Shown: positions 32,401 to 63,480 of the stretch, piece by piece
Layout of the letters: the number at the start of each line of letters is the position of its first letter
Numbering within the stretch: position 1 is the stretch's first letter
NCBI GenBank assembly: GCA_964270895.1
Contig: OZ185437.1
DNA length: 64,000 bases
Origin: Podarcis filfolensis
Taxonomy: Eukaryota
Strand: one strand, 5' to 3'
Made by a program: the position numbers and the translations under genes
Notes under the pieces: generated by a model
The model's database searches: none
What the model was told of the DNA's origin: nothing
What the model saw: the letters and a program-made list of their open reading frames with translations, nothing else

Positions 32401-35400
32401 CATGCTTCACTGTTTACTCTTATGATGCTAGTAAATCCTTGGTTGCAAGTGTTGTTGTTTTAAAATCTAGGAACCACCATCCTACAAAAGATTATCAGTT
32501 CTAGCCATCTGTTTGGTGGGGGGATTCCAATCACATAGTAAAGGCATAGCTTTCAGCTGAATTATTTGCTACTGAGATAAAGAAAGAGTTGAAAATATGT
32601 TTGTGTGTTTGTGCATTTGCAACAAAATGGGATAGAAATAAAAACAATCCTCTGAAATGGGCAACTTTTTCTTGTTCACAATCAAGGAGCACTTGAAGAT
32701 ACTATGTGCATCTGATATTTTATTAATGCACCTGGAAAAAGAAAACAGAACCTAGCATATGACAAAAAGAATTCAGAGTATGTAGCAAAGGTTTGAGTAT
32801 AGAAGCTGTTGGGCCCAGTAGTTGCTTTATTATTTCAGCATTATTTGAGAAACAAGATACACAAAAATCATAAATTATCTACTATACTGGAATAAATTAC
32901 TGTAGCCACTGGCTGCAATACATAGCACGATATAAAACATTATACACTCTGTGAAAATATACCATGAGGATATTTTGCAGGAAAAGAATATTAATGGAAA
33001 ATATATCTATCTATTCACACCATTATATGTTTTCCTATTACATAAACTAAAAGGTCTGAGTGTAAATTCAACTCTATGGGGGGCACACCTCCTGCAAAAC
33101 CTTCCTCCTTGGTATCTTTGTCTCAAAGTGTGATACATTCTTTTTTACATCTTTGCAGCTGTGAAATCAGATAAAAGCATTTCCCTCTCTTTTGAAGCTT
33201 TCTAGAGGAGAAGAGAGAAAGCAGTATTTTAATGCTAAATATAATGCGAACCAATCACCTTAACTTGGCTGATTTGCATATCCAAGGACGATGTTGTTTC
33301 CAAGGTATCCAGCGCTTTTTCTTTTTCAGTGATCCAGATGGACAAAGCTTCAAATTTTTTGCCAAAATGATCCCACTTGTTTTTCACCATTTCCATGGTT
33401 TTAATACTAAAATCAACCATATTTAGTAGAAAAAATTAACAGTTTGTTACTGTTGAACTATGCCCATTTTCTTACATCTCCAGTTTGCTGAAAATGCTTA
33501 CATAATAGCATGCCTTTTTTATTAATTTTTTAAAAGCATATTTCAAATGTCGGTTTACAGGTTTTATAAAAGTTATAGCACCTCAGGAGTCTGCCCTTAT
33601 ATTACCTCAGGAGTGTGGGAGTTAAGGGACGTGGGTGGCACTGTGGGTTAAACCACAGAGCCTAGGACTTGCCGATCAGAAGGTCGGCGGTTTGAATCCC
33701 CGTGACGGGGTGAGCTCCCATTGCTCAGTCCCTGCTCCTGCCAACCTAGCAGTTCGAAATCACGTCAAAGTGCAAGTAGATAAATAGGTACCGCTCCGGC
33801 GGGAAGGTAAACAGCGTTTCCATGTGCTGCTCTGGTTCGCCAGAAGCGGCTTAGTCATGCTGGCCACATGACCTGGAAGCTTTACGCTGGCTCCCTCGGC
33901 CAGTAAAGCGAGATGAGCGCCGCAACCCCAGAGTTGGTCACGACTGGACCTAATGGTCAGGGGTCCTTTAGTGTGGGAGTTGCTTGGCTACTTCCCTCTC
34001 CTGAAAAGTTCTGTGAATTAGCAAAACTTCTCATGTGTGATTTTAAGACGTATAGCAAGAGCAGTCTGGCAAGAAGCTACCCTGTAGCACCTACAACATT
34101 GCCAAGAGAACCTAAGAATGATTTTTTTTAATAGGTTTATTATAATTAGGGACTGTTAGCCATTTAAAAATTTGGAACCTATGAACGCCACTCAGAGCCA
34201 TTCAAATTAACTGAAGTTCTGAGGAGATGTGACTTACCATGAAACCAAGACAAAATGTAGAGAAGAGGTTTTTGAACATGTGCATATTCCTACCTACCTA
34301 CTCTGCACCTTGGTATTCAATGCAGCATTGCAGCTATTTAGTGCATGTACCTATTTGATGCTCACACAGTTGCAACAGATCTGCTTTGGCACCCTTAGGA
34401 TATTAGCTTTCCATTCTTCCCCTCCCTTTAAAAACATTTATGGATTAAGGCTTTGGAGTAAATCTTGGAGAGCATGTGTACAATATCTGATGAAATCTCA
34501 GACTACTCAGAGCTACTGAGCAAGGCCTTGAAATGGCTCCTGTTCACTGTTCAAGAGTTCATGGTCATTCTTACTACATTACTTTTCCATAGTAATGTAG
34601 TTCCCTCAATCTCCATTGTGCATTTCCTTTGTTCCACTTCTGTTCATTCATAGCTACCATTTTACCACTCCCTCCCACCACCAGGTGTGTAACATGCTTC
34701 ATTAAGAGCATCCCTGTGTGATTGCGCTCATGCCACAACTGTTCTAGAAGAGAGGGAGAATGCTTCTCAACAAATAATGCTTGATGTGTAGTAGCCTAAA
34801 ACCCACTCTACTAACTTTTGTTGTTGTTGTTGTTGTGCTGGATGTCCTTTCTGGGCAAATTTCAAACTTGCAAAACCCATCAATTCCAAAGGAATATGAC
34901 TGGCTTTCTTTACAACTGATGGCGTACATTTTCTATCTTATTTAGGAAGACAAGTCTATTGTTAGCTGAACTGAGGCAAATTGGGCACAAGGAGCAGGGC
35001 AATCTGTGAGGCTGCAAAGAATGAATGTGCATTATGAATCATATAGCTATATACATAAACCATACATTAGGGTAAGTACATATCTGAGGAAGTCAAACAG
35101 TCAGTTGAAGATGCATGCATATTTTTCAACTTAATTATGATTGTCTTGCACCTGGATCAATTACATTACATCTGTTAAAACAGCACTGAAAACATGCACT
35201 GAAAAACAGCATCTCACTGGAAGCAATAAAAAGGCACTAGAAGTCTTCTGAAGGAAACTTTTCTACTTGTGGGAAAGAAAGAATAAAGACCACTAAAAAA
35301 TTACATAACTGGTGTTAGGAGAAAGAGAAAAGAGCAATATGGAAAGAAAGAAGCCACTCACAACAAAACAAATAGCATATGAAATTGCATTCTCCATGAT

Positions 35401-38400
35401 TACTTCTGGGGCAATATTGTCTTACTAAAATGCAGCTCCTCTCTAAAGGTAGTGAAAAGTAACCATGAAGTAGGTAAACAAATTTACATAGATTTATCCA
35501 GCAGAAAAAAAGGGAAGGTATAATGAGAGGCCAAATGCAAAAAAATGACATTTATTTCGTTGTACCTGCATCACTGAACACTGTTCATTCTGAAAAGTAA
35601 TGTTCCAGAGAACAGAACACTGGACTTAGATCAGAAGTAATGTGGTTTAAATCTCTGTGCAGGCATGGAATCAATGGTTGCCTTGAACAACTCACTAACT
35701 TTCAGCCTCAGGTTCTTGCCTATGAAATGGGAATATTAGTGAACTCTCCCACAAAGGTGTTGTGAGGATGAATCAATCTTTAAAACTCTTTTGGGACTAT
35801 ATGATGCCATGGATGCATTGATTTGTAGAATTTTCCAAATGAACTAGGATCTCAACAGAACTGGGCAGCACTTCTTGGGAGCAGCTCCTTGGGCTGTGGC
35901 ACTGCAAATATATGTATCAGCCCTGAAAGGCAGCAACAGCAATATATTTAAGTTTTTGGTTCATTTGTATGAATAAATCTTTGGAGCAATGTGTGGACAT
36001 CAAAGTGAATGTGTGAATTGGCACGTGTCCACTGATATTTTGATTTTTGTTAACAATAATGTGAGTTGTAACATGGTTGCACCTTTAGGCCTTTTAAGAA
36101 TGTTGATGGCTTATTCAAAAGCCCTGCTGGAATTAATAGGTGGTTTACATATTACGGCTGCAAATCATTTTAATTGTCTCGTGCAGTAGTGTAAAAGTTG
36201 CTATATGCGTAACAGCCATAACATGTTAACTGGTCCTAATATTTTCAAAACTGGACCATTAGGCCAGATCCAACTTAAGGCAGGAAATAGAACTTTGAGC
36301 TGAAAGTCCACTGTAATGAAGCATCATTTTTAGCAACAAGAAAAAGAACTGGGTTTTAACTTCAGTGAGGAAAAAGGCACATTTTTATATTCTCGTGCAC
36401 ACAGATTGGGAAAATATGAAGAAAAATACTTTAAAAACTAGGCATACGTTTCTTCTAAAGGCTTCAGGCACTTTAGGATATGGCACTATTCATTTATCCT
36501 TGCCTGAGTCAAATATGTGTGTTACTGAAGTGTATTATATTACTTCAGTTCTGTGCTCAATTAACTGCGCTTAGTTACATTAAAATTAATTGGCTTGAAC
36601 ATGCATAATTGGATTTATAATTGCAGCTTAGCATGGCAGTTCTAAGGTCACTTGCATAAATAAATGCAAATGAGTATCTGATAAATGAGTATCTGCTTCT
36701 TAGTACAATGCATCGAGGGACAAGTTACTATTTTCTGTATTGGTTAGTCATAATAGTTGTTTATACTCTTTCAGTACTACATGGTAATTTCTGCTGTATG
36801 ACAAACTGAGGTTTACAAAGCCAGTTGTGAATAAACACCGCATTTTGATAAGACAACAAAATGTACAATTCTTGTGTCAGGAGGGAATTAATACTATGAC
36901 TGTTTAAGAACATACTCTTCTTCAAGTGAAGCTTCCATTTTTTTAACTTGTTCCCGGACCGACTTTGCTTGCTGTTGAAGGGTTTGCTTCTTCTTCTCAC
37001 CAAGCTGTATTGCAAAAGACTTCTTGACAAGAGTCTCAGCCTCCATGGCCATGGCTACTGTCTGCTTAGAAAGTGCCTGTAAAGAGGTGTGGAGTTATGA
37101 ACAGAATATATTTGTGGGGAAAGTCTAGAAATACGTTATTAGCAACTGGTCAAGCAGTGATCATTATTCATCTTGAGTGGATACCTTTGTAAAAAAAAGA
37201 ACTCCCAGTAGCTTCATAAAATTACTACTACAGTGGTACCTGGGGTTACTACACTTCGGGTTACATACGCTTCAGGTTACAGACTCCGCTAAACCAGAGA
37301 TAGTACCTTGGGTTAAGAACTTTGCTTCAGGATGAGAACAGAAATCGTGCGGCGGTGGCACAGCGGCAGCGGGAGGCCCCATTAGCTAAAGTGGTGCTTC
37401 AGGTTAAGAACAGTTTCAGGTTAAGAACGGACCTCCGGAACGAATTAAGTACTTAACCCGAGGTACCACTGTACAAGTATCTCTGGTTTAGATGAGGAAT
37501 ACCCCCAAAGAACAGATTACAAAATAGTATAGTATATAAATAGGTTTTTGAAAGGAACTAATAATAATGGATTGTTATTATTTATTTCCTTTATGAATCA
37601 CTTCCTATGAAGTAATTCAAAATGATTTCATAATACAGGGTGGCCCAAGAGTAGGTATACTTTTAAAAACAAACAAACAAACAACAAACATTTCTCTTTC
37701 CCGATACTGTGAATGATGAGAACTTGAGTCAAGAACAAAGAAAATGGATTCTAAAGCAGTATACCTACTTTTTAGCCACCCTGTACAATGAAACATATCT
37801 AAAGCAATGGCATATATAAAAATGGTTCTTGGCTGATATGTAATGGGAGGCAATTCCAAAGGGCAGGTGCTGCCACACTAAAGACTCGATTCCAACATCA
37901 TGCAGAATATATCTTTGGATAAGAGGGTATCTATAGGATGCCCTCTCCTGCAGAGCACCGTGATCAGTTGGGTATGTAAGTGATGAGGTAAGATGCTCTT
38001 TTAGGTATCTTGGTCCTAAGTTGTGTAGGGATTTATACATCAGCACCAGAACTGGAGGTGGTAGCCTCTCTTGTTCCAATATTCTTAACTACTAAGTCCA
38101 CAATTCAGTCCCACTGCCAATGCAGCAGCCACCATGCCAAAGATTGCCAAAAGTGCACAGGGCCTGTTTTCCACTACCTGAAATCCTGCCCAACTGATAG
38201 ATTACTAACTTGAACGGATAAGCAGGGAGAAGGGAATATAGGAATTGGCACAGTCTGTTCTGCTGCATTCTGTGCCCCACTGTAGAAAGAGAGTGAAACC
38301 AGGACTCTACTGAACCTATGGGAATTGTTTATAATGGATGCTATGCCCAGGTTGACCAATATTGTGATGTGTGTGTTTTTTTCTTGGAAAATATACTATA

Positions 38401-41400
38401 GCACATTTTCAAGGATGTTTCCCAAGGCAAAAACAAGGAAATAAAATAAGATATATATCCTCAGTATAATAGCAAAAGAACCAATTATGATTGTAAAATT
38501 CCAAGTACAGCAACATACATACCTTTGTCTTTTCTAGTTCTGATGACAAACTCTCTAAGCTGCTAAAGCTTAAGATGCGTTCAAGGGCAGAGCTTGCATG
38601 ACTAAGGTACTTTACAACCGTTTCTTTGTCCCTTTCAAACTGTTCCCATGTGCTTACAGTGAGCTACAAGAAAGAAAAAGAAGTAAAAGAAAAAGTTTGC
38701 CTGCAATTTACTAGCGATATTGTCAAAGTTGATAATGACCTGGTTTGAAATATTAATTTTGTCTAGCTCAAATGATAATGAGTCAAACACCATTTCCCCT
38801 GATAGGTTCTTCTCCAATTCAGAATACAAAACAAGATTCTGAACATGCAAAATCAGTCTATTTTAGCACTTCATCTATTTTTTTGCTCATACTCCACAGA
38901 CACTAATCACAGCTCAGACACAGCTATGCAAAAGCCCTGTAAAAGCTTGCTTTTAGGGCTCTAGAAAACCCTGCAGCATCTGAGCCACTGGCACAAGAAA
39001 GTTCCCAAGCCTTGAGAACAAGGGAGCTGTGTAATCACTGAGTTTGTCTCAGCAAGAATCATCATCTGCATGAATCGATGCTTAGGCAAAATCTCTTTAT
39101 ACACACTCTGTAAGCCACCCCCCCAACCCATGAAACTGTTAGGAGCTCCACCTTAGCACAGTTTTAATGTAAGTCCCATGGCCCAGAAGAATGTATATAG
39201 AGTATATAAAAGGAATATGCTTAATCTTCAGCTCATGCCAACAAGGAACTTTCCTAGTGCTTTGTCAGAGAAGCTCAAGGTTTGCATAACTGCCTTGCTC
39301 TGACACTTGGGAGCTTCCCTGAGTTATGCCCTGAGCCAACAGCTAACAGACTGTACAGCTCCCTGGAGCTGGAATGCCTGTATGTCTGCAGACAAGTGCA
39401 AAGTGGAGATGCTGGTGTTTCACAAGCAGAAAAAATGGCCAATTTTAACAAGAAAATGTATTACATTGTTCAAACTCAAAACCAAACAACTAAATATAGA
39501 GCAATTAAATCATAAACAAGGGGACTGTTTTTGTTTCTCTGTGGAGTTACATGAATAACACACTGACCTGCAATTGATCTTCACGTTTATCCATAGATTG
39601 CTGCATGTTTTCTAACATACTCTCCAACTTCCATAGGTCTTCTTGCACAGTGGGTGACAGACCACCTTCAATCTGTAGCTGCTTACCTCGGGCCATTTGC
39701 TGTTGCACATCTTGCCTCTTTTCATGGAGCCTCTTTGTCTTTTGCTGGGAGAAAACATCGGTAAGGGCTGAAGCAGATGTAGACATACTGATTCCCTCAC
39801 TACAGAAATAGCCACATAGCTATGTATATATACAAGTGGCAGTGAAAGAGGTGACTATAAAAGTGCTTACTAACGAAACAAGTGAAGGTTCACATATGGG
39901 CTATTGTCCTACCTGGTGATACCGAAGGAGTTGCTGAGCCTGTAATAAGCTTTCAACCTCTAAGATTTTATCAGCTTCTGCCTGAGCTTCTTTTGAATTT
40001 GTGATCAGTTCTTCCAGATTGACTTTCACCTCTTCTGTGTGCTGGACGCAATCACCTACAGCACTCAACATTTTCTCAATCTATTGTTAGGAGAAATATT
40101 AAAACTCCGTGAAGCAGTTCAGTGTCAAGAATCAATACTTTCAATCAGGGGTGAGGATCCTTTGGCCCTCCAGATGTTGCTGAACTACTTTTACCATTAC
40201 TGGCCAGTGAACATTTCTGCTGGGCCTGATGGGAGTTGTAGTTCAGCAACGTCTGCAGGGCCAAAGGTTATCCACTCCTGCTTTTAATGATTAAAAAAAC
40301 AACAACCCTGAATTTTGCCAACTATTAAATTTATTATTTCTAAGTTTTTACTTTTGTGACCACAGCGCACTGCAAAGTAGGTATGAGTAGATTCCCTCCA
40401 TTCCATTTGGTTAATGCTTTCTGAATTTGCTCTGTCTCACTTTTCCTGTTTCCAGTTCAGCTTCAGAGATTTTTTAAATGAATTGCAGAAGTGTCATTAT
40501 TCAATGACTTTCTCCTCCATACTAGTACATATTTTATATAGGAAGTAGCAAACCCATCTTCCAACTGGGATCCTTATGTAATCATAATGGTATCATTAAT
40601 GAACACGAGGAAGGGATTAGCAGGCTCAGGGGAAACCCCAAGGATATTTAGGGAGAATAAAAAATAAACATGTGTCTAAACCCCTCCCCCCAAAGCCCAT
40701 TGAGGGCTAAGCCTTCTCAAGCTGCATACACAAAATACATTTAAAGCACCCATTTCAAAGAACCCTGGGAACTACAGTTTAGCCTTCACAAAGTTACAGT
40801 TCCCATGATTTGGGTGTGTGTGTGCTTCAAGTGTATGATAGTTCATATGCAACCTCAGAGGCCGCATCTTGGGATCTCATGCACCAGTTCAGTCCATATG
40901 AGTAACGGCATTCTTTCAGATAGCCAGGTCTCAAGCTGTTTTGGAATTTATAAGTCAGCCGACAAAAACACCCCAACAACAACAACTTACACTTGGCTCA
41001 GTATCAACTTGGCAGCCAATGCTGCTCTTTGAGCAATGATATCACATATTCACAGAAGATGCTAAACTAGCATTGGGAAAGGACAGACCTCTGTGGTCAA
41101 GATAGTCAGCCAATACAACACGTGGAAACTGACCCTGTATAAAGGAGCCAAACTACTCTAACACAGTGCCCCTTACTCCCAATTCACAGAGTTGGTCCCG
41201 TACAATACCATGTTATCAAGAGCTGCAGAGGGCCACACTCCCCAATTTCTCTCCTGATAAAGGTCATACACAAGGGCAACCAAGGCTGATTCATTCCTGA
41301 ATCCACAGTGGTATGAGTCCAAATAATCCATTTCCTCCAATAGTGTCTGAAGCTGTACAGCTATCACCTTCTCTAGCACCTTTCCCCAAAAGAGTGGAAT

Positions 41401-44400
41401 TTACAAGGAATAGTTCCCACAAGCCTCCAGGACCAGCACACTTTATTTTGAAAGCAGCCACACTACCACCTCTTTCAGAGCATCACCACTTCAAGCAATG
41501 AAGTGTTCATCACACCCTAAATCCAACCAACCTCTCACCTCAGACTCACTCAAATCAATCACGATGGGCAAGGGTAGAGAGGGCATATAAGTACAATGAA
41601 GTGATACTATACCTCTATTAACAAGGCTAAGAGGCTCTTAAAGTCACTTGAAAGTCTGGAAAGCTCATCCTCTTGCTTTTTGGCTTCATTCTCTGAAGAA
41701 ACTTCAGACAGGGCAGCGAGCCTAGATTTCAACCAGCTGATAGCTTCTCCTTGCTTGCAAGTTTCTTGCTGAATTTCCTGAAATATAATTAATACAGAAA
41801 TTAGAAACACAAACAAACAGTTTAGTCAAGAGTTGTGGGTTGCCCAACTACTTGATTCTGTTTACCCAGGAAGTGCCAGTTCTCTTACATTCTACTGTTT
41901 ATATCTCTTACATTCTACTGTTTATATAACCTTGTTTACATTTGCTATAAAGGTAAATATAAAGGACCCCTGGATGATTAAGTCCAGTCAAAGGCGACTA
42001 TGGGTTTGTGGCACTCATTTCACTTTCAGGCAGAGGGAGCCGACGTTTGTCCACAGACAGCTTTCCGGGTCATGTGGCCAGCATGACTAAACCACTTCTG
42101 GTGCAGCGGAACACCATGACAGAAACCAGAGCGCATGGAAATGCCATTCACCTTCCCGCTGCAGCGGTATCTATTTATCTACTTGCACTGACATGCTTTT
42201 GAACTACTAGGTTGTCAGGAGCTGTGACAGAGCAACAGGAGCTCACCCCGTCGTGGGGATTCGAACTGCTGACCTTCCGATCAGCAAGCCCAAGAGGCTC
42301 AGTGGTTTATACCACAATTCAGTGCTCTAAAATGCCAAAAGCAGAAAAGAGCTTATTTGCACTTTCAGTTTCTACCATCTGAACTCATCTTGCTAGTATT
42401 ACAAGCAAAAACATCTATCTTATTTTCAATAATTCTAAATATACCTCTATTGATGTTTTAAAGTGATTATATTTAGTGGTATCACTGGCACCATGCTTAA
42501 TCTTCTTGAGCTGGGCTTCCCTTGACGAAATCCAGTTTTCCAATTTAGAAAATCTGAAACATAACCACATAAACAACCAACAGCCAATAAGGAAACAGCA
42601 ATAGTCATTTATATAAATCTTAATGGAACTAAAAGAATAGAGTTTTGAACTTACTATACCTCAAAAGGCTGTTTAGAAGGGAAATTGTCTCTGTTAAATG
42701 TTTTCAATGATGGAACATTTAAAGCTGGTGAATATACTTTGGAAACATCCTGATCCTTCTTCTTTAATGCAGAGCCTGTACTTCTCTTAGGTATACTTTT
42801 ATATTCTGTGTTACTGTATATATGTAAGATTGGAAAAATTTCCTCTACTCCAGAGGAGTGTTGTTGTATATTAGGGCTTATCATCTGGGGCCCTAGGACT
42901 CTAAAAGCCCTATGTAAAAGTTCAGCTTAGGACCTCTAAGGAAGGGAGGGAGAGGGAAAGGGAGAGAAGGAAGAAGGCAGGCAAAAGAGAGAAATAGAAG
43001 GGAAGCCTATGAAGTTTTGGCTCCAGCCCTGCCTACTGTTGGACCACAGCTGCCCACATATTACTCCTACAGGAGTGAAGCTCTAGAAAAAAAAAAAAAA
43101 AGGTTGGCCTCTCAATAGTTATATATTTATTTGGGCATAACAAAACGATGAGCAGGAGTGCTTTTCTAATTATCTCCACCAAGGTTTTATTACGTCTTTA
43201 CCATTTTCAGACAAATAGTACCTGTCCTTGTAGTCTTTCCATTTATCTGGGTGATCCATTAGCTTCATGTAGGTGCTGGCAACCAGGGATTTAAGTTCAC
43301 TGAGGGCTTTCTGGCTACTTTGTGATGTTGTCCTAAGTGGATCCGATTCAGGCAGTTTCAAGCACAATTCATTAATCAGATGCAATCTTTTCTCACATAG
43401 CTGTAAGGAGCCTTTCTCGCCAAAGAACAACTGAAGGCAGAAAAGGAAAATGATTGCCAACTCCACTGACATATTTGATGTAATATACCTTCCATTACGG
43501 GTATTTGTACGTCTATGGAAGACAAAACTGACACATGAAGTTATAAAACCTAAAGGTCAGGTCACAGTCAATAATAATTTAAAGTCTGAGAAGTTAAGAC
43601 TGAAATTCTAAGCACACTAACTCTGTGTTTCTGGCAGTATTTTGAGCCCAGTTCACATGACAAACTTACATGCTGTTGATTCTGAACGACTGCTTTTTCA
43701 CATAAATAAGCTCACACATAACCTCATAGTTTCTCACATATGTATTTAAAATCTTGCAAGTACATTTCAATTTAAAAAAAGATATGACAGTGCATTTGTG
43801 AGAAGACACACACCTTCTCTCCAGCTTGTGCCACCATTGCAAGGAATCCAGCCCTCAAACTGCCACATGGTAGTGTTTTTTATACTTTATTTTTCTCTCC
43901 CCTCATGAGTATTACAATTACTATTGAGATTCTATATATCAAATGTGACTGTTTAAAGTACCTAATGGGCAGCCCTCCCCATGTGATCACTGTTGACCAG
44001 GCACTAGTAATTTTGATTAATTTTTTTATAATCACTGAGCTATACAAGTACCCTTGGATCACAATCCAAGTTGGAGAATCCTATCCATTTGACTGTGGAA
44101 GTTGAAATCATATAGGGTTTATTTCAACACAAGCGTATCTTGAACAGGAATGTAAGGATCATATTGCTTGTCTTCTGAAGCACATTGTGTACTTCACAAT
44201 TCTCATGGAATTGTACAAGCACATATGTACAATTTCTACATGTACCCATATAACTGCTTTTCAGGCTTACCTTGTGCTCTCTAATTATCTTCTCACTGCT
44301 CTCCTTGGACACCAGCTCTTGCTCTCGAGCTAGTTCAGCATGGCATTCTTGCACTGTTGCTAGGAATTTGCTCTTTTCCACTTGTATCTTCAAGCGAAGT

Positions 44401-47400
44401 AAATGGTATGGGGCTTCTGACTGGGCATCCTACACTCCATAAACGGTGGGAGAGGAAAGAGGAAGTTAACATGATACTCATTTCCATTATTTTATAATAT
44501 GATGTTAATAATTTTTTTAATATTGTTTGAGCTGCACAATGTAAGTAAATATAAACACATGGGGATTTCTAATTTTGCCTGTTCAAGAAAAGCTGAGAAG
44601 AAAATTTGTACAAAGAGACCACCCACAGAGACCAAGTGGAACCATGCTTACTTAAATCTGGAAATACTAACCTTCCATTGCTTATGTAACTTCCTAACAG
44701 CTTCCTGAAGAGAGCGTTGTTCTTGCTCAGGAAGGATATCAGTAAGCTCATCACAAGCTTTCAGGAAAGCATTTAGCACCCTCTGGTCCAACTGACTGAA
44801 AAAATCCTGATGTTGAAAAATAATAGTACATAGTGAGAACGTTACTGCTTTGCTAGGGAAAACACACAACTGGTGACAAAATCTCAGACTAAAGGAGGAA
44901 GGTGGTATTGCTGTTGGGCCTGCTTTTATGAATGGCATCTGAGCCTATATTGTCCAAACTACCAGAAAAGCATGGCCAATACAAATACTTCATATCACTA
45001 GGAACTTAGGACATGTGGGTATTTTGGTGTTGTAGTGGTAATATTGGTAATGATAATGATAATGATAAATTATTACAATGATGAAGTAGTAGCCACATCA
45101 AGCAACAAGGTTCCATATCACCACTTTCCTCTAAATCTTTATTGGCAGGAAACAGAGCTACACTTAGTACATAATTTATATTACTAAGTTCCATATAAAA
45201 TGTCCCTTGTGCTGCTCACTCCCCGTCCAGCTACATAAACCCCAAACATTACTCAGAATGGGAGGCCAGTTTTTATTTCTCACATAGCTACTCATGGGAA
45301 TTCTCTTTCAAGCTATGGGGGAAAGGTGTGGGTGGGCAGCTATATGCAAGTACACACCGACTTTCTGTTCTGAGTAACAGATGGTACACTGTGATTTGTG
45401 CACATCCACAAAGGTGTGAGGTTATTTTCGTCCTCTCCCCACAAGCAGAAATTTGCCTGCAGCAGGAAAAGGTCAATCATATCCTAACTTATGGGTCTGG
45501 AGTAGGTTAATTCTCAATTTCACTAAAATCAGCTTTTTCAGAAATTATATCCTGTCACATACAAATATGTAAATGCTTGCTTTATTGTGATTCCTAAATA
45601 TACATGGCTATCAGCTGAATAGGATCATGTTGAAAATAAGAGTTTATACTCACGGTATGTTTTCTGAGAAGTTCTTCAGGTCTGCCTTTTTCCTTTAGGC
45701 AACGATGTGCTATCTGTAGAACATTTTCTAATTCTGTTCTGGATTCCTCAAACTGCTTCATCAAATGACTGTTTGCCTCCACATTTTTCTTCCAGTCACT
45801 TGTCTTCTTGGCCATATTCTTTGTAAATGAAAACAGAAAAAGATAACAATAGCTTTAGGCGTGGTATGCAACAAAGTTTTACTCAGAATAGACCCACTGA
45901 AAAAAAAAATGAACTGAAATGAATGAAGTTATCTCCATTGATTTAAGTAGGTCTACTTTAAGTAAAACTTAGTCGCCTATCACCCTAGTTTTCATGATTA
46001 TGTTACTCTACTCCAAATGGAACAAAACAAAATGATGAACATTTCCGTGTTTCCTTTTAAGCATTTCTTTAATAAGAAGCTTTGAAAGAGTCTGACTTCT
46101 GTGAGGGTAGGTTAGATTTAGTCTGCTTTAATATGCACATGGCCTGAAAACTGGATATTTTGAGAGCTATAGTGCTTAAATCATCAATGGGAAATCAAAC
46201 AGGGCAAAATCAGATACGACCCACAATTTGTCTGAAATCTGATACAGTATATTGCTAACACGCCAATATCTAAAAAGTAATAGTTCTGAAAACCTAGTTT
46301 AAACTGGCCTTAGCTCCTAAGTCCCCCAGACCTTCTCTTTCTTTCCATCACAATCACCTGCAATACCTGAAACCGCCTCCATTTCACACTGCAGTTACTG
46401 GGACCAGCACAGTGGTGAAAGGTGGAACCAGAAGAATTGAGAGAGGAGGAGGAATATTTCTCCCTGTCCTCTCAAGCCAGTGGTGTACTGCTTAGTGGCC
46501 CTTGTGGAAAAAATGCTTCCCCAAAGGCCACTGGACCTGCACAGCATGTCTCCCTTTCTCTCATCATGAAGGAGCCACTGCCATTTGCTCCAGTAAGAAA
46601 GTTCAAGGAGGAAAGGGTTTTGGTGGCCAGGGGCTAAAGCAAAGGTTAGGCACCTCTCCTCCAGTGGACCACCATTCCAAATTTTCATCTCCTGAAGCAG
46701 CTTGCCTTTGGAAAAAAAAATGTATGTCACATGCTGCTGGGTTCTCTGGCTGCTTCCTTCTCTACTCTTGTCATCTAACCTGCATTTTTATTTCTACAGC
46801 ATAATTTGGCAAGGGTTTTCCCAAAATTTATCAGACTCAGGAAAATCTTCTTTGTGTAATCATAGAACTGAAAAGTAACCCGGAGGCTGCCTAGTTCAAC
46901 CTCTCAACTAAATGCAGAATCTGTGATGCAGGATGCAGCTAAAGCATCTCGTAACAGAGAGATGCCCAGCCTCTTCTTTCACACCTCAAGCTGCCTTATT
47001 TGACGTTATCTGGGTGGCTCTGGCTTTCTTCTCAGACATTTGAGATGAAGGCTCAGCTCTTTCATGCTGGGAGTGCTGCAGAATGGACCAACCTCCTTTC
47101 ACAACAAATTACCTGAAAAGCAGCTTGTATTTCTACTACTTTCTTTTGAAGCACCGAAAGATTGAAGTGGTGTAACACCTTACTTGAAGTCACAAACTTC
47201 ACAATGGTCTGACTGTTTCTCTCAATTAGTGATATGTCTTTCTTGCAATTTTCTTGATAAGCTACTAGATCCTAAAAGAAAATGAAAAATGAAAGCAAAA
47301 TTAAAAGTGTTTTTACAGTAAGGAAAACTAAATAGTCAAAATAACACCAGTCTCAAACTAATACATCCATGTGGTATGTCCACATTTTTTCTTTTTTAAC

Positions 47401-50400
47401 ATAATAATAATGAGTGAATTTATCCTTAAAATACAGAAGTTGCAGTAGTATCATTTCACAAAAGTTAGGTGTTATTTATTATTTTGCAAACGTTTTTTAA
47501 AGGTCGTAGTCCTGTGTGAGGTTTATGTGTACTGAAGCCCCAATGTTTTCAAATAGCTCTTGAGCATTTGAAATGAAACAGGATTGATCATGTAAAATTT
47601 TAATGTAAATTTTAGTTTTTAAAATATTATTACAGAAGATTCATTGATACTCATTAAATGCTTCAAGGCTATTTTCCTATGTAAATATGTTACATTTATG
47701 ACAAACCCGTATTGTGGGCTTATTAGCATTCAGAAAGCAATTTCTGTGTCATATGGAAAATTCACCTGTAACATTAGTTATGTATGTCTCAGCAGGTGAC
47801 TAAGGCTGCAGTTTTAAAAACATCTTGTATATAATTCAGCCCCAGTAAAATCTAGTGGGGGGCTACCTTTGAGTGAATATACTTGGGATCAGGATTTAAG
47901 TTACTCATACGCATGTTCCTTCGTCTCTATCACTGCATTCCCCAGAAGATAAAGAGGCACATCAAAGCAAAAAAATAAAAGGCACTCAGCAAGTAGAATC
48001 CATTAAAATTTAATGATTATTGTTTAAAACATCACAAAAAGTAAGGTGGTGCCTTAAGTGTTTTAGAAAGTACCATTATTGTAATTTTTAAAAGCAAAGA
48101 TCAGCAGCCTGGAATAATATGGCAGGTATGGTTTAATTATGATTTCTCCAAAGCAGGATTATCTCCTGAAGCAGAGCCTATGGTAGAGGGAACTTGCTTA
48201 CCAGACAATTTTAATGTCATATTCCTTTGATTCCTTACAAAGATTTACTAAAGTATTCCTTCTAATGATAGCAGATGAGATTCCTGGGTTCTAATAGAAG
48301 TGCGTGATAGCTGCATAGGTCAAAGAGCTGCATATTGCTTTAATAAGGATAGATTCACAACGCTGTATGAGGCCTTTTTTCCTGTTCACTCAGAAGAATA
48401 ACATTTTTTCATTGGTGCACAGGGTTGCTGCCTAAGCTTGCAAAGGTGACTTCTGCTTTCAACACTCTGCACTCAACACACTATTTATGATAACGTGTAG
48501 AAGCGAAAGGAAAGTCCAATGCTGTAAAGAAAAATATTGCATAGGAACCTGGAATGTAAGAACCATGAACCTGGGTAAGTTGGATGTGGTCAAAAATGAG
48601 ATGGCAAGAATAAATATTGACATCCTGGGCATCAGTGAACTAAAATGGATGGGAATAGGCGAATTCAGTTCGGATGACCATCATATCTACTACTGTGGGC
48701 AAGAAACCCACAAAAGAAATGGAGTGGCCCTCATAATCAACAAAAGAGTGGCGTAAGCAGTACTGGGATGCAATCTCAAAAATGATAGAATGATCTCGAT
48801 ACGAATCCAAGGCAGACCTTTTAACATCACAGCAATCCAAGTTTATGCACCAACTACTGGTGCTGAAGAAACTGAAATTGACCAATTCTATGAAGACTTA
48901 CAACACCTTATAGAACTGACACCAAAGAAGGATATTCTTCTCATTATAGGGGATTGGAATGCTAAAGTAGGGAGTCAAGAGATAAAAGGAACAACTGGCA
49001 AGTTTGGCCTTGGAGAGCAAAATGAAGCAGGGCAAAGGCTAATAGAGTTCAACTGTTCAACTGAATCTCCCCTTTGAGCATTCATGGAAGAAATACCTGA
49101 TGTTGCTGTTTAAAAACATCGGCAGGTTGGACTTCGGGGTCTAGGACAGAAATAATTTCATTGACTTTCTCAAGAGATTCATAAAAATTTGTAATTTGCT
49201 TCTCCAATTCTTCCAGGTGAGGCAGCAGCTGCTGAGATTCATAGAGCACAACCGGACAGGTACCATCTACCTGAGAAATATATATATATTCACATTATTG
49301 TATATTGTGCATTTTTAAAGTAAAATGGGCCTTATAATGCATCATTATTCCCTTAGCCCCAACATAAAAGGTTTAAAATAGTAACAGGTTCCTATAATAT
49401 TATTCACTTTATGTTGACTATATGTAGTTATTAAATTATCATTAGAACATTTGTGTGGGTGAGATGTCATTCTACTGTCTTATACTCCACATCAGCTTCT
49501 CTCTCCCACACATTTCTCTGCCTACCCTTTTAGCCTCATCTTACCTGCCATCCTTGCCTGATTTCCTCTTTGATAGGGCAAGTAATACTGCAATCCTACA
49601 GGCACTCATCTGGGAGAAAGTCCCACTGAATTCTCCGAGACTTACTTCCAAGTAGGCATGCACATCAGTCCTAGCCTTACATCTAAGCTTTAGAACATCT
49701 TCAACAATTGCTTGAATACCTTGCCAAGCTGTCCTTTGATTCCTGACATAGTTGCAAGCATTTCATTGACTTCTTCTGGTGGGAGTTCCTTGGTAACCAG
49801 TTGTGCTGTCCTTGTAACCATCTTGTACTGAGATTCCATCACAGGCACTTTCTGTTTAATATCCTGCAACAAATAGTTCAGCAGTAACTATGTATGTAGG
49901 TATGCACTTTCTTTTTATACAGTGACTGTCCGGCTAGTTGTAGGTGCAAGATCTACTCTGGGTAAAACTTAATACTACCTCTGGTCCACCATTATAATGA
50001 CTACACTACACCAGCTCTTCCTGGTTCTCATGTAAGCAAGGGAGAAATACAACGGAAAGTGTAATATTTGCAAGGAAAGAAAGTACCTGAAAACCAGAAC
50101 ATATAAACTGATGCACCAGCTAAATAAGGCTCTGCCCTAGAGGATGCACTCTCCCATAAGCCCTGGGTACAACAGGCAGGACAGGATAGAAGACAAGGGA
50201 ATAATAGTTGGGTAAACTAAACCTAGTCCCCCAACACTCTGGACCAGTGTGGGAGGTGCTGTTGGGAGCTGAAAGGGTAGCAAAACATCACCTTGCTCTC
50301 TCCATTGGACTCAACCCTGAATGTTTAAAGAATGGTCTCTGCTGGAAGAAAAAGAAACTTGCCTCTATTTCTTGAACAAACATTTTCATATTTAGAAAGG

Positions 50401-53400
50401 ACACTTCTAAAGGAGCACGGAATTTCCTCTTTGCTTGATCAGTGAAAGCAGACAAGGCAGCTACACCATCCAAATATTCTTTTCTCATTCTTTCTAATTC
50501 ATCAGCCCGAGCGTACTATGAAAGCAGATAAAACAGAGGGTCAATAGAACACTGACTGGTTCAGGAGCAAATGCTTGCATTTCATTCAGTATTATTTTTA
50601 GAACTCCGTGAAGTGATATTTTCGCATTGAAAATAGCATTAAGTAACATGCACATCTTTACAGTGGCACAGGAAGGGGGTGCGGTGGGAGCGGCCCACCC
50701 CAGGTGTCATCACTGAGGGGGGTGTTCAGTCAACAAACGCGACAAAATGTGGCTGAACTCGACGCTGTGTAGTGGAGAGTGTATGGATAAGGAGTCAGAA
50801 TAGTATGTTCTGCATCTGAGGTCAGAGGAAGTATGCCAGAATTGCACTGGCGGTGCCACGGGGCTTTCCGCCCTCCCTCCCCATTGGTGGGGGAGCCTGT
50901 GCCTGTGCCGCTGCCCCCTGAACTTACTCAGGCTCGGGCATCGCTCTTAAAGGCAGAGGCAGGCAAGAGGGGAAAGCAAGCCGTCCCACCAGCACTTGGG
51001 AGTTGTGTGAAGCCACTTCTTTCTTTGCTGCCACGCACTCTGTATCTCTGTTACACTCAGGTATTCATGGGTTTCTTTTCCTGAGTAATGAGCTGTGTTT
51101 TTGAAGTTGCGAACAAATTTACATGGTGACCCTTTTCTCCTCCTCCTCTCTCTCTCTCTCTCTCTGTGCCCCCTTCCACCTTTCCACATATCCCCGCTTA
51201 ACTGTTTCCTGCCTCGCTTTAAATCCTTTCTCACATGGAAAGACACCTTGGGGAAGTGATTTTGCCCTTTCGGCTCCTTTTTGTGTTAATGGGTAACAAC
51301 TATGGAACAAAAACCACCAAGGACATACTTGTTTGACTTGCATAAATAACTCTCTCCATCGTCCATTCAGCAACAGCAGCTGTTGTTTTAAATCTCTGGA
51401 AATGGTCTCATCACACGTTTCGATCAGAAAATTGCCAGCATCATTCATAGCAGTGTGCTGCTGAATCCACTGTGGTAAATGCCGGAAGAAATCCTAAGAA
51501 GAACACAACTAGCAATGAATTCTGAAAATGCAAACATAAAAACCTCACACCACTTATTAAAGCATCATTTGGTTTCCTCCTTACTTCCCTTTACAACTAG
51601 ACTGACAATGTCTGTTTTCTGCATGTTGTAAAAAATGAAAACCTTTGGTACCTATTTGTTATGGGGGCAGGTAGCCATCATTAAGACTTCCCAAATGAAG
51701 ATTTGAGACACTGAAGTGCAACCTTGCTTTATTTACAGTTCATGCTTCAACAAATGCACTTGCCTTGATAAGAATAAATAGGTAACCCTCTTTCAAACTT
51801 TGAAGCTACAAATGTGAACAAGAGCAGCTGTGAGATGATCCCAACCTCTTCAACTTCATACTGGGGAGAAAGGCTGAGGACTGTGTGGCCAAAGCACTCA
51901 AAGAACCTCGGAGACTGTGTAGGACTAAACTGGCAAAAAAAGCCACCAAAATATTTACTGGCCCTGCCTTCTAAAGGGAAGCATGGGGGCACCTATGCAG
52001 AAACTGTACATATCAGAGATTCTATGTGTGTAAGGAGATCCTGGACCAGGCTGATCTTTGAAGACACAATGCATGATAGCCTTCAGCAAACTATGATGAT
52101 AAATTATTTCTACTACCTATTTCTTTCCATATTCTGAGCCTTGGCTTCTTTCAAAGCTAATCCTCTGATCACTCTTGTCGGAGGACCTGAGCATATAGTG
52201 GCTTCACTACTGTTGGTGCTACATCTAGGTGTATGTGTCTCCTCTTTCCATTTCCTTCTCTCCGGGAGACAATGCCAGACCTGTCTCTACCTCTGAATCC
52301 TCCTGCCCTGCAGGGCTGCCAACTTGAATAATTTTTTTGCGGGGAGGGGCAGGTAAGCAATTACATGACATGGCACATTTGAATGGCAATACTTATCAAC
52401 TTTGGGGGGCACTGGCCCCCTCAAATATTTTATTGGGGGGGGGCTGAAGGGACCTTGGCCCCTAGGAGTTGTCTCCTATGTTGCCCTGTAACATCTAGCC
52501 TGCCCCCTTTCCAATAGTTGACCGAATCTATTGTAACTAATTATTTGTTTTGTTAGCAAATGATGCTGGTCCACATGTATGTCCAGTGCTGCTGTGCTTA
52601 ACGTTCTTTGGATCAGGGTCCCTGTTAAACAATGGCAAAGAGCACACACAGCCACTATAGCATTTATCAAAGAATGTTCCTTACCTTTTTGGCATGTTCA
52701 GATTGATTCAGCATTTTTTCGGCATCTTCTAGCCAGGCTTGCAGACTGGCCACTGTGCTGCTATATCGGTCCCAATTAGCAATGACTTCTTCTAACATGC
52801 TTCTCACACTTCTCACCTCTACTGACAAGTGCCTCCACTGTGTTGTTGTCTCATTCATGAATCTCATAACACTCTCTATCTCTTCGGCTGAAATACAGTA
52901 CTGGAGTTTAACATAAATCTTGACCCAACTGAAATGAGTATTCCCAGAGCTGCAACTTTTAATCCATTAATTGGTTAGATTAACCACTTCTAAAACTTTT
53001 GATTGGCCCCAAACTGTGCCCTGGTTAACTGGGCAGTAGCGTTTTGCTTTTGTTTTCAATGTTTAACCTGGTACGGATGAAAACGGCATATGGTGAGCAG
53101 CATCTTTAAAGAAGTATCCCTCCTTCTCCCTAATGCAGGGGGGAATAGAATGTTACTTCAAATATTACGTCTGCTACAACCAGTGCTTTTTTCTAGAAAA
53201 AGAGGTGCCGGAACTCACCATGAACGCCTCCCTTGTTCTCTTATAATGGCAATGGGGCCCCACCTGAGAGGTGTTGGAACTAGGTTCCAGTGAGTCCCAG
53301 CTGAAAAAAAACCCTGGCTACAACACACATGCACTCACAGTCTCAACACAGAGTGTGTTTTTTCACTTCAGAGCTATTGCCTTAGGTCATATGTAAATTT

Positions 53401-56400
53401 AATTAATATTGCCACCCCAATGGCTTAAAAATATGAGCTGGCATGGTTAATTCACCCCACCCCCATGACGCTAAAGGGAGGAATTTTTTAAAAAAATGGA
53501 AAATGGGGGGGGGGAGGCAGGAGAGAATAATCCACTTCTCCACCCATCTCCATAGGGAATTCTCTTGTTTGTATTTATAGAACATTCCCTAGTGCTTGGT
53601 AATTGCTACAATAACTGTACAGCGTCAGTAGTATTATTACCCCCAGCCTTACTGCAGGTGTGCGACTGGGCTATATGGTTCTTATTTATCCTAAAGCCTA
53701 GTTCTTATACCACTGGAAATACATGACCAAGAAAAGGGAAATGGTCTTTGCTATATCAATGCAATCTTAAGGCTAAGAAGCACTTTGTACAAACAATAAA
53801 ATATGTAAGGAATATCACAGTGTATCTGTTCATTTCTTATACAATGCTGGCCTATAGATTAATAGAAATCTGTTTATCAAACAAGGAAGCACAAAGCCAC
53901 ATCAATTTCTCTGTACTAAGGGTAGAACATGTGGATGATACAGGTGCCTGAAATCAACAATGATACACCCATTAAATTACTAGCTGTTACCGATAATGCT
54001 GTCAAGGGACTCCTATGTTTTGCTTAGGGACTGCTTGCTTCCATATGCTTCAGTGCAAAACTAGAGAATGCCTACTGCGTTATTGCCAAGAATATTGCTT
54101 TGAATTTTCTTCATCTAGTTGATCTTCTAGTTGTTAATTTGTACACTGAACTCTAATTTTGTCATGTTCCAAATTGCTTAGCAACAGTTCAGCTTGATCA
54201 TACAGCAAAAATGGAATCTAGAAGCACTTTAATCTAATGCCAAACAAATATATTGTTACTTACATGAGCCATTAGCTCTGGCGTACATCTCAGCTGCCTT
54301 TTTCAAGATTTGGTAAGTAACTTCATACTGCTCAAAAAATTTGTTATTTTCTATAACAGACTGAAAAGAAAAAAAAAGAGAGAGAGAATGCAAATGATAT
54401 TGATACAATTTATGGGGAAATAAACATTACCTACATTTTCACATATGTTAAGAATTTTGTCTGATTTCATCTTTCTCTATTGGCTTATAAAATGAAATAT
54501 GGAAATGCTTCTGAACATTTATAAACTTTACACCATCATCAAAAAGTGCATTACTTTGTAAAATATTAACAGAGGATTTCAATAATCATTGAGCACAAAT
54601 TATTAGTTATTAAAAGGTGTCACAATTAGGGATTGGGATGTCATTCAGATTAAATGAATGACTGTCTTATAATGCATCAGAGCACTGATCCGTCTAATTC
54701 AGAATTTAATTTTTTAATTAAATTTCCATTTTACATTTTAGAATATTCACTTAAACAACCTTAAAATATCAATGACTTCCCTTCCTCTCTTTTCATTTTG
54801 AACAACATAAATCCCTTCACATTTTATATAAACTAATTCAATACTGTCTATAGTAACGTGCAGAGCAGATTTGGGGATGGGACGAGAGTAGGAGAGGGAG
54901 GCTAACCACTTGTGCTAGTGCTAATCGTTGCATTGGCACAAAAATGTTTGTTGAATACTGCCCCATATCTATTCAAATGTCCTATTGAATTTGATGGATC
55001 TTACTTCAAAGTTAAGTGGGATTTGACTTGCACAGAAATGAATGGAGAAAGGAGAATACTGGGGAGATGAATGGCCTGTCTGCAACTACAAAATGCAACT
55101 TGACTTTACTAGTAAGCTCTTCTAGTGTCAACTTTACATGTTGACACTTTACATGTTACTAGTATTAACTTTACATGTTAGCAACTGTAAATGATATGTT
55201 GCACTGAAGAACAGACTAGGGACTCAGCTACACAGCTGCAAATAAAACGTTTTAAATGTGTTGTAAAGTGTAACATACAAATGCGACACTAGATGCAAAG
55301 TTCAACGTATTTTTCAAAACATTTTAAAATAATGCATTTTCACAGCGTTTTTTATATGTGTATAGATTCCACCTAGGTCATTCTCCTCCCACCTCAAAAA
55401 TCCATAGATAATTAAAACAAGGGGGACCCTTCAGCAAGATATTGCAGTGTTTGTAACTGCTCCAGTCTAGCACCTTGCACCCCAACCTGGCTGACAGCTC
55501 CACCCAACAGTCTCGTGCTCCAACAGAAGGTCAGCATTCTGAAAGGGTTGTGGGGGTTATGGGTATATTGTGCCCAATCCAAGCTGTATTAAATTATTTT
55601 ATTTCTCCATTAATTTCTATGGATGGCTCTCTCTCCCATTCATGGGGTCATTTAAAAATAGCTTCTAATAAAACAGAAAGTGACCTTTTCTGACAATGAG
55701 ATGGTTCTTCCTACCACATATATATACCGGTATACATTTCTCCACACTCCTGTTCCAATTACTCCATTCTATTCCAACCTCTCACTCAACTGTCAGTTCC
55801 CCCCACCTCCTTCCAGTCTTTTAATGTACTGTGACATCATGTTATTATTGGACTATTTTAGGGTACCCCCCTTAAGTTTCCACCCCCAGAAGTTTTTTTC
55901 TTAAAAATTGTGCATATCTTTCCCACCTCTTTTAAAAATGGAAGCTATGATGATCAGATTCGGTAAAAGCAACCAAACAACAAAATTTGCACCACTGCTA
56001 TCTCAACCACAGAGACTTGTTGGTCTTGCAATCTTTAGGAAGACTTAGGATGCAGTGATCAATACACCACCCTAGTCTACACCATGGTTGTCAGCTGGGA
56101 CTTGGGGCTGCTCTATTAGTTATACTTAGATTCCATTGAAACCAGTGGAACTCAAGTCATAAATAGATCGTTCCAATGAATTCAGTGGAACCTAAGTAAC
56201 TTAGTCCAGATCCAACACTATGTGTGGAACATCTTTATAGTGGTATACTATATCAATATATTATATTGATTATATTATATTGATATAATCTGTGCATCAA
56301 AAATACAAACTTGTCTCATACTGGCCAGAACCTTGGTCCATCTAGCTCAGTATTACCTACTGACTGGCTTTCCAGGATTTCAGCCAGTAGCCTTTACCAA

Positions 56401-57638
56401 GTTCACCTGGCAATGACAGGGTTTGAACCCGGCACATTCTGCAGGCAAAATGCAAATTCTGTAACTGAGTCAGTTACAGTGTAACACAAAACTGTAGGTT
56501 CTTAAGTAAAATGCTAAGAAAGCTGAACATGAATGCTTTGTGACTGCTTAGGAGGGAACAGTTCATTTCCAGAGGATTGACAGTTGCCTAGTAAAAAGAG
56601 CATATATTAAGAACATGGGCGATGTGGCACAGTGTGTGCCTTGACTCATCACAATGTGGGAGGCTTCACCTCCACTCATTCTGTGACTCCTTTCTGTGGA
56701 AAATATGTTAGCCTAGAAGAAGAAGGAAGCTTTTTCTTTCCAAAAAGGAAGAAAGATTGCCATCATACAGACCATGCAGCTGTGGGTGTTATCCAGCTGG
56801 TGTTATCCATCAGCAGGAAAGGGAGTGAGGCAATTTTATTTGCCCTGAATGTTCCCCAAAAATCTGTTCTGGAGGATTGGGTAGGCCCCCAGAGCAGCTT
56901 TCAGGGGGCATGGGGATTGCATGGGAGAAGAGGAATTGCCAAAGGTTGCTTCTCTGCTCATTCCGCTGAAGGATGTGCTCCGCCAATGGAGGGGCACCAT
57001 TTTGACACCACCCTGTAAGATCTATTTATTTTTGCATTCTTGGTTTATATATTTCATTTACGTTTCAAAGTTGCATTCAAAAATGAATCAAGATAAGCTT
57101 ACAATATAGTTTTGAAGAAGCAGTTCAACAGATTCCCTTCTTCCATATTTGATAATCCATGATTTTAATTTTGACTCTGCAAGGACCAAGAGTGATAGCA
57201 GACGGTATTTCAGTTCCAAGAATTCCATTTTCAGCAGATGGAGCTCAGATGTAGAGGCAACAAATTCAAACCTAGACATGAATCACACTATAGTTAACAT
57301 TCAATTTGCAGAAAATTATGTTTTCAGGCTGCAAATGCAAAGCCTAAAGGCACATTTAATTTTACATTGTCGTTATTTTGTATATTGCTAATTAGTAGCA
57401 AACTAATGATTATGTTTATTAAGTGAAGAAAATGTGACTTACTGCTCTGTACTAAACATGCTTACATCAAAGTACATTTCATTTAATTCAACAGAGCTTG
57501 CTTTTTAGTAAATATATTTAAGACTGTAGTCTAAATGCTTTTCATTGTCAAGTATCATTTTCCTACTTCTCCCATAAATATGTTCAACATGTTGTTACAT
57601 AACATATTTCCTAACGTTCATTGACAACAAACAACCAC

Positions 57639-57675
<37 letters not shown>

Positions 57676-63385: not shown

Positions 63386-63480
<95 letters not shown>

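Follow-up and report, generated by a model that had tools for sequence, protein, structure and literature searches.

A probable CPG2-type transcription unit within SYNE1 of the lizard Podarcis filfolensis, closed by a conserved intronic stop

Does the SYNE1 gene of a lizard contain, nested within it, the short transcription unit that yields CPG2 in mammals? To our knowledge, CPG2 has been studied in rodents and humans only, and the human CPG2 region of SYNE1 is a bipolar-disorder risk locus. We analyzed a window of 64,000 nucleotides (nt) of Podarcis filfolensis (contig OZ185437.1, zero N), which carries part of SYNE1 (nesprin-1) on its minus strand and begins at about exon 13 in the numbering of the initial annotation of this DNA, a numbering that we keep. 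Our results make it probable that the composite terminal exon 33 of SYNE1, known in mammals to close two KASH-less products, CPG2/CPG2b and nesprin-1-165 (Enaptin-165), has its orthologue at this lizard locus, together with a nested unit starting near exons 15-16. In rodents, CPG2 is known as an F-actin-linked regulator of postsynaptic glutamate-receptor endocytosis, and its brain-specific, activity-induced expression is documented for rodents only (PMC11545860, PMC4091099). In a passage of Duong 2014 (PMC3981789), the conservation study of Simpson & Roberts 2008 is reported as finding "good support" for CPG2.

Splice sites were fitted to the proteins of Varanus komodoensis and Podarcis muralis. 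The resulting model joins 18 exons (16-33) into a coding sequence of 2832 nt, running from 57228 to 36894, which encodes 943 amino acids (aa) with a single, terminal stop; all acceptors are AG and all donors GT, save one GC (exon 20). All exons lie on the minus strand. Exon 16 (57103-57271) contains the proposed start: within gaaaATGGAATTC, ATG 57228-57226 stands in the context aaaATGG and translates to MEFLELKY. The model continues through exons 17 (54360-54264), 18 (52887-52685), 19 (51493-51329), 20 (50515-50363), 21 (49863-49720), 22 (49270-49097), 23 (47271-47113), 24 (45818-45654), 25 (44806-44672), 26 (44429-44271), 27 (43430-43222), 28 (42553-42445), 29 (41777-41613), 30 (40080-39913), 31 (39744-39568) and 32 (38663-38523) to the constitutive part of exon 33 (36916-37076). 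The end of exon 33 reads GAAGAAGA|GTATGTTCTTAAACAGTCATAG, with its final base at 36916 and the donor GTATGT at 36915-36910. When exon 33 is spliced to exon 34 (~33406), the giant frame goes on as ...EE|DIKTMEMV. When the donor is left unspliced, the first base of the intron supplies the third position of the Glu codon, and the reading continues as GAG TAT GTT CTT AAA CAG TCA TAG. This intronic extension (36894-36915), composed of the donor, the tail codons and TAG (36896-36894), gives E-YVLKQS* and a product ending in EEEYVLKQS. The start, the stop and the length of 943 aa had all been put forward in the initial annotation, and each proved exact. The predicted product consists of spectrin repeats only, without KASH, and the Pfam family PF25034 (Spectrin_SYNE1) is present in its relatives.

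The lizard product aligns colinearly with rat CPG2 from end to end: of 939 aligned residues, 609 (65%) are identical, and there is a single 4-aa indel. The rat entry (CAA64740.1) has the 941 aa given in the initial annotation; it begins MKMEFLELKY and ends EEEYVLHNF. Both proteins are drawn from the same SYNE1 segment (exons 16-33) and reach their C-terminus by the same route, namely read-through of the exon-33 donor followed by EEEYV, four further residues and a stop, the last four residues being LKQS in the lizard and LHNF in the rat. The Met of MEFLELKY is common to both and the lizard ATG aligns with rat residue 3; Met1 of rat CPG2 corresponds to a Leu in the lizard, where the reading frame begins two residues later. 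Exon 31 of the lizard is four residues longer than that of the rat (LQIE, as in birds, turtles and snakes). The difference of 2 aa between the two proteins had been attributed to this exon, which does contribute four residues, but the explanation missed the two extra N-terminal residues (MK) of the rat that have to be subtracted. A second rat product, CPG2b ("candidate plasticity protein 2b", Q6PLD8_RAT), is 965 aa long and begins 24 residues earlier, in exon 15 (MPPDQLEDMAERF...). The serines S890 and S913 (CPG2b numbering) are the PKA switch serines of the rat protein (PMC4091099), and the first of them is kept as lizard S868 in the context ERILS-FSSLE; birds carry Asn. By homology, the role of the lizard product is likely that of CPG2.

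The tail encoded by the intron was then compared across vertebrates. Protein relatives were collected by phmmer with 60 residues of exon 33 plus the tail, followed by a word-index search. This yielded 49 fetched proteins ending in E-YV..., and in 46 of them the tail, from the split Glu codon onward, is exactly seven residues long. These seven-residue tails span placentals, a marsupial, birds, turtles and a lacertid. After E-Y-V, the tail reads LNKS in birds and turtles, LDKS in most placentals and a marsupial, IDKS in the primate Saimiri, one of LHNF, LHHF, PHNL, PHTS, PQKP or LHKS in rodents, and LKQS in P. muralis and in our window of P. filfolensis. Snakes present a whole tail of five residues, caused by an earlier TAG, or of nine in Naja (EYVLKYIDK); in the five-residue form a CAG has turned into TAG and the old stop is still found downstream. 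The ending EYVIDKS, which the initial annotation gave for short SYNE1 isoforms, is indeed that of Saimiri, and together with the rat ending EEEYVLHNF it shows that EYV-type ends occur in mammals as the annotation had presumed.

At the DNA level we compared seven sequences: P. filfolensis, Crotalus horridus, Chelydra serpentina, a bird-like contig, one further contig, and a bird and a mammalian RNA contig. All seven share an invariant donor, GA|GTATGT, and have TAG or TAA at intron positions +20 to +22. Mean pairwise identity among them is 0.81 for the tail bases and 0.82 for the last 60 exon bases, and falls to ~0.6 farther into the intron. Extension of the exon-33 alignment past its donor (BLAST) reaches 48 nt in the turtle, which ranks first among 21 exons, and 111 nt in the snake. 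This alignment defines a conserved block right after the stop (36805-36893, minus strand) that would form the start of a putative 3' untranslated region (UTR). A stop within seven codons after a donor is expected by chance in ~30% of cases, and an in-frame Met within a coding exon is likewise unremarkable. The stop position and the first 22 intron bases are conserved across amniotes beyond chance. Other reptiles, birds and turtles keep both the frame and the stop, and this distribution dates the intronic-stop element to the amniote ancestor or earlier. These comparisons also show that exon 33 can serve as a composite terminal exon whose stop is locked in position.

One cichlid entry ends near the same boundary, and two other entries continue past it. 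A CH-start model of Oreochromis aureus (P0060, 1366 aa) halts at ...NKKYV, two residues beyond the homologous exon boundary, and two further entries (P0008 and P0011) carry ~40 additional residues after KKEYV. The residues YV are encoded by the GTATGT donor, and an early end at the homologous exon may therefore predate amniotes. One entry that clustered with a tail fragment (P0010) was rejected as an unrelated bacterial ABC transporter.

What is being conserved in these bases is a separate question. The initial annotation held that a coding-constrained intron start predates the split between mammals and reptiles. The age stands, because reptiles, birds and turtles retain the frame and the stop. 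The constraint on the peptide is less certain: in an alignment of the first 22 intronic nt across amniotes the stop and the bases are kept, but 16 bases cannot separate such a constraint from one on splicing or polyadenylation, and codon-level constraint is not demonstrable. Positions +1 to +22 might instead be conserved for RNA processing, i.e., for the strength of the donor, for U1 binding and for the way in which splicing and intronic polyadenylation are balanced against each other, with the tail itself neutral within a frozen block. Positions +1 to +6 are the donor itself and already fix E-Y-V, residues 4-7 vary widely in rodents, snake tails count five or nine residues, conservation runs ~15-25 nt beyond the stop, and the lizard and turtle tails differ by two non-synonymous changes and one synonymous change. 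For these reasons, peptide-level constraint is unproven. On the other hand, 46 of the 49 entries show no indel and no stop loss even where residues have changed, and the pattern L-[NDK]-K-S persists across birds, turtles and most mammals. We regard conservation for RNA processing as a serious candidate that falls somewhat short of being the likelier account. It addresses why the tail is conserved and not what the element is, and it is compatible with the composite terminal exon that we propose.

How would such an exon operate? Depending on whether the donor GA|GTATGT is spliced or the RNA is cleaved and polyadenylated within intron 33, the locus would produce either giant nesprin-1 or a KASH-less product. 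Transcripts that read through this donor exist in other amniotes. A bird RNA contig (L010, from Logan) represents a fully spliced, CH-start mRNA of 1427 codons which reads through the donor to EYVLNKS* and continues into at least 240 nt of 3' UTR. In a mammalian RNA contig (L011), exons 30-33 are joined and the donor is read through to EYVLDQS*. In the lizard, the unspliced mRNA could be cleaved and polyadenylated at any of three candidate signals of the minus strand, at 36741, 36174 and 35556. The proximal one is a weak candidate, AATACA (36736-36741), which aligns with an AATAAA of the turtle and of another contig (L007). It need not be an obligatory end, because the bird contig extends ~95 nt beyond its own AATAAA. 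The second is an ATTAAA at 36174 in intron 33, and the third, a candidate distal signal, is an AATAAA followed by a T-rich stretch (35551-35556), 1340 nt after the stop. A 66-aa open reading frame inside the putative 3' UTR gave no matches by exact look-up. An AP-1 site at 36505 in the 3' block was dropped as it is not conserved in the snake.

Word counts from sequencing data can be read in more than one way. Four assemblies of 73-97 Mb from one organism, whose RNA type was guessed, contain 0.56 of the sampled 31-mers of 34000-37100, a stretch of which exon 33 constitutes only 5%. RNA-type runs of seven further organisms contain 0.14-0.28 of the 31-mers of the same stretch. The share of 0.56 roughly fits a putative 3' UTR of ~1.3-1.6 kb, for which the AATAAA at 35556 is one possible end. 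Alternatively, the share may stem from pre-mRNA or from a slightly diverged relative that covers the whole stretch. The former would be in line with the possibility that read-through in the lizard is non-productive intron retention, such that the RNA is retained in the nucleus or degraded and its reading frame never translated. This we consider very improbable, as the same end gives stable proteins in the rat (CPG2; PMC11545860) and the position of the stop has been kept since the split between mammals and sauropsids. Moreover, a read-through mRNA would not be a target of nonsense-mediated decay, because the stop lies 20 nt past the donor and no downstream junction would be present if the transcript ends in intron 33.

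The 5' end of the proposed nested unit is less sharply defined. The start codon is ambiguous among products of 943 aa (ATG at 57228), 960 aa (57279) and 961 aa (57890), because the ATG used depends on the site at which transcription starts. No ATG in any frame is found in the 43 bases of exon 16 that precede the ATG at 57228. The ATG at 57279-57277 lies among the last bases of intron 15, just after a TGA, and opens the frame MSRF; it is kept in Crotalus and absent in the turtle, and the Ensembl model of Laticauda starts there with MSRFNFV. The third ATG (57890-57888) lies in frame within exon 15 (57880-57992, minus strand), has the context gatATGG and would give a CPG2b-like start, MAERF. This exon-15 Met is kept in snake, turtle and mammals, and a 959-aa model of Myotis begins with it.

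The non-coding DNA around this exon stands out. The region upstream of exon 15 and intron 15 (57272-57879, minus strand; 608 nt) are the most conserved non-coding DNA of the locus, with intron 15 alignable to the snake over its full length. A non-coding block that immediately precedes exon 15 (57993-58262, minus strand) can be aligned with Crotalus over 270 nt and with Chelydra over 242 nt. Among 21 exons, none of the others has more than 53 nt of conserved upstream flank in the snake or more than 24 nt in the turtle. The two strongest outliers of flank conservation are found exactly at the ends of the proposed unit, one before exon 15 and the other after exon 33. We infer that the block is a candidate internal promoter or enhancer of CPG2b type. 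It contains an AP-1 (TGASTCA) site at 58085-58091 (unstranded) which occupies the same alignment columns in lizard, snake and turtle. Such a conserved AP-1 site would fit the activity-regulated expression of mammalian CPG2. A second AP-1 site is found in intron 16, within a 35-nt block (56634-56668, minus strand) that is 94% identical to Crotalus; this block also occurs ~180 nt downstream of exon 16 in another contig (L009) and was not found in intron 16 of the turtle. Matches to TATA, CRE, MEF2 and CArG motifs near exon 15 were rejected, being either not conserved or part of the splice acceptor. Intron 14 holds a second conserved non-coding element (58565-58711), ~600 nt 5' of exon 15. Over 110 nt it shares 79% identity with the turtle; it occurs in the snake too, and its core is AAGTACTGTTGCTTAGATACTACAGA. 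It might act as an enhancer or belong to an alternative first exon. Within intron 15, a (CT)n(AT)n run at 57640-57670 is absent from snake and turtle.

Taken together, a nested transcription unit would start near exons 15-16 from an internal promoter, possibly driven by AP-1, and give a CPG2- or CPG2b-type product, and transcription from the CH-domain promoter with the same end at exon 33 would give the nesprin-1-165 type. The exon-33 extension is the end of nesprin-1-165/Enaptin-165-type proteins of 1431-1433 aa in mammals and birds and of 1393 aa in P. muralis; the exons that encode the CH domains fall outside our window. The P. muralis protein (UniProt A0A670IV44) has a tail identical to that of our window, EEEYVLKQS, and is 94% identical to the lizard product over 943 aa, most exons singly reaching 95-100%. 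It differs in starting at the CH domains and not at exons 15-16, and in running past the GC donor of exon 20 into the following intron and lacking exon 21, which looks like a modelling error. Alternatively, then, the lizard might possess the nesprin-1-165/Enaptin-165 type only, with no internal promoter, no CPG2-like product, and a Met at 57228 that is merely internal. The only lacertid entry with the tail (A0A670IV44) has a CH start, as does the bird RNA contig, and exons 15-16 lack a CpG island. This alternative, however, leaves unexplained why the non-coding DNA before exon 15 and across intron 15 is so exceptionally conserved. It is also at odds with snake gene models. The annotation of Crotalus horridus contains a separate gene (KAL7987672.1, 965 aa, partial) whose reading frame opens with the first codon of exon 15 and closes at the EYVLK stop, and the Laticauda laticaudata model (A0A8C5RH87, 908 aa) begins in intron 15 and stops in the exon-33 extension. 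Both are 78-80% identical to the lizard product, the snake tail being two residues shorter. In the Crotalus annotation (L003, JBNQXW010000009.1), SYNE1 is divided into at least three genes, a CH part, the 965-aa CPG2-like part and the rest; the places at which it is cut coincide exactly with exon 15 and the exon-33 extension. Finally, CPG2 is established in mammals. We consequently judge it unlikely that the lizard locus yields the CH-start type only, and we retain a nested CPG2-type unit as the better explanation.

Several observations nevertheless weigh against a nested unit, in addition to the drift of tail residues 4-7 in rodents and the altered tail length in snakes. Word-index searches with residues 1230-1393 and 440-640 of the query protein P0013 yielded no spliced lacertid contig; segments of this protein returned only other species or unspliced single-exon reading frames. 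No CpG island was detected near exons 15-16. The number of AP-1 motifs in the window is at the level of chance (11 seen versus 11.6 expected), and it is therefore conservation alone that gives these sites weight. The 965-aa model of Gopherus and the 955-aa model of Zonotrichia both start at the residue aligned with Met1 of rat CPG2b and are likely projections of the rat protein and not independent transcript evidence. Lastly, the second PKA site, S913, is lost: lizard, snakes and birds carry Ala at this position, and Myotis has Gly. S913 looks like a feature of the rodent lineage rather than a defining one of CPG2.

Our view is evenly divided on whether the full CPG2 module, composed of an activity-responsive, AP-1-bearing internal promoter just above exon 15, the exon-16 Met and the locked stop, was already present in the ancestor of mammals and reptiles; the 3' end is perhaps earlier. 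If it was, the use of a nested SYNE1 gene to control glutamate-receptor endocytosis according to activity would be an ancient amniote trait and not a mammalian one. The retention of the frame, of the intron-encoded stop and of the non-coding DNA at the two ends in lizards, snakes, turtles and birds implies that the short isoform is old and constrained. As an orthology, the result is sound but ordinary: an orthologue is expected, and the tail is already annotated publicly in the sister species P. muralis, whose entry ends EYVLKQS. Three points are modestly new: a correct lizard model of 18 exons, the ambiguous start, and a conserved block that is a candidate regulatory region. This block (58262-57993), with its AP-1 site, can be compared with the human CPG2 promoter. 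The exon model also has value for annotation, as it accounts for pipelines that split or truncate SYNE1 at exon 33 and that mis-model the GC donor of exon 20 in squamates.

Indeed, this donor (50363-50357) reads GAG|GCAAGT and defines a GC-AG intron; it is the same in Crotalus, and the turtle presents GTGAGT. Gene models err at this position: that of Lerista edwardsae (KAJ6660200.1) terminates in read-through of this donor, and exon 21 is skipped in the Crotalus model.

Early ends of a comparable kind are known elsewhere in nesprins. The 3' end N1-3'E90 arises by intron retention and terminates in AGAGYPHQ* (Rajgor et al. 2012, PMC3388047). It follows the same principle as the exon-33 end: the donor is left unspliced, the intron supplies a few residues and then a stop, and the transcript acquires an alternative 3' UTR. 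The exon involved is a different one. Python and mammalian proteins (P0012, P0039 and P0094) end in short tails resembling read-through just after a later exon. SYNE1 seems to possess several early ends near one another. Downstream of exon 34, a non-coding block in intron 34 (32742-32987) is 74% identical to the snake and 67% identical to the turtle, and may be an alternative exon or a regulatory element. At the other end of the window, a long (CT)n/(GA)n microsatellite occupies 63340-63500, in an intron near exon 13.

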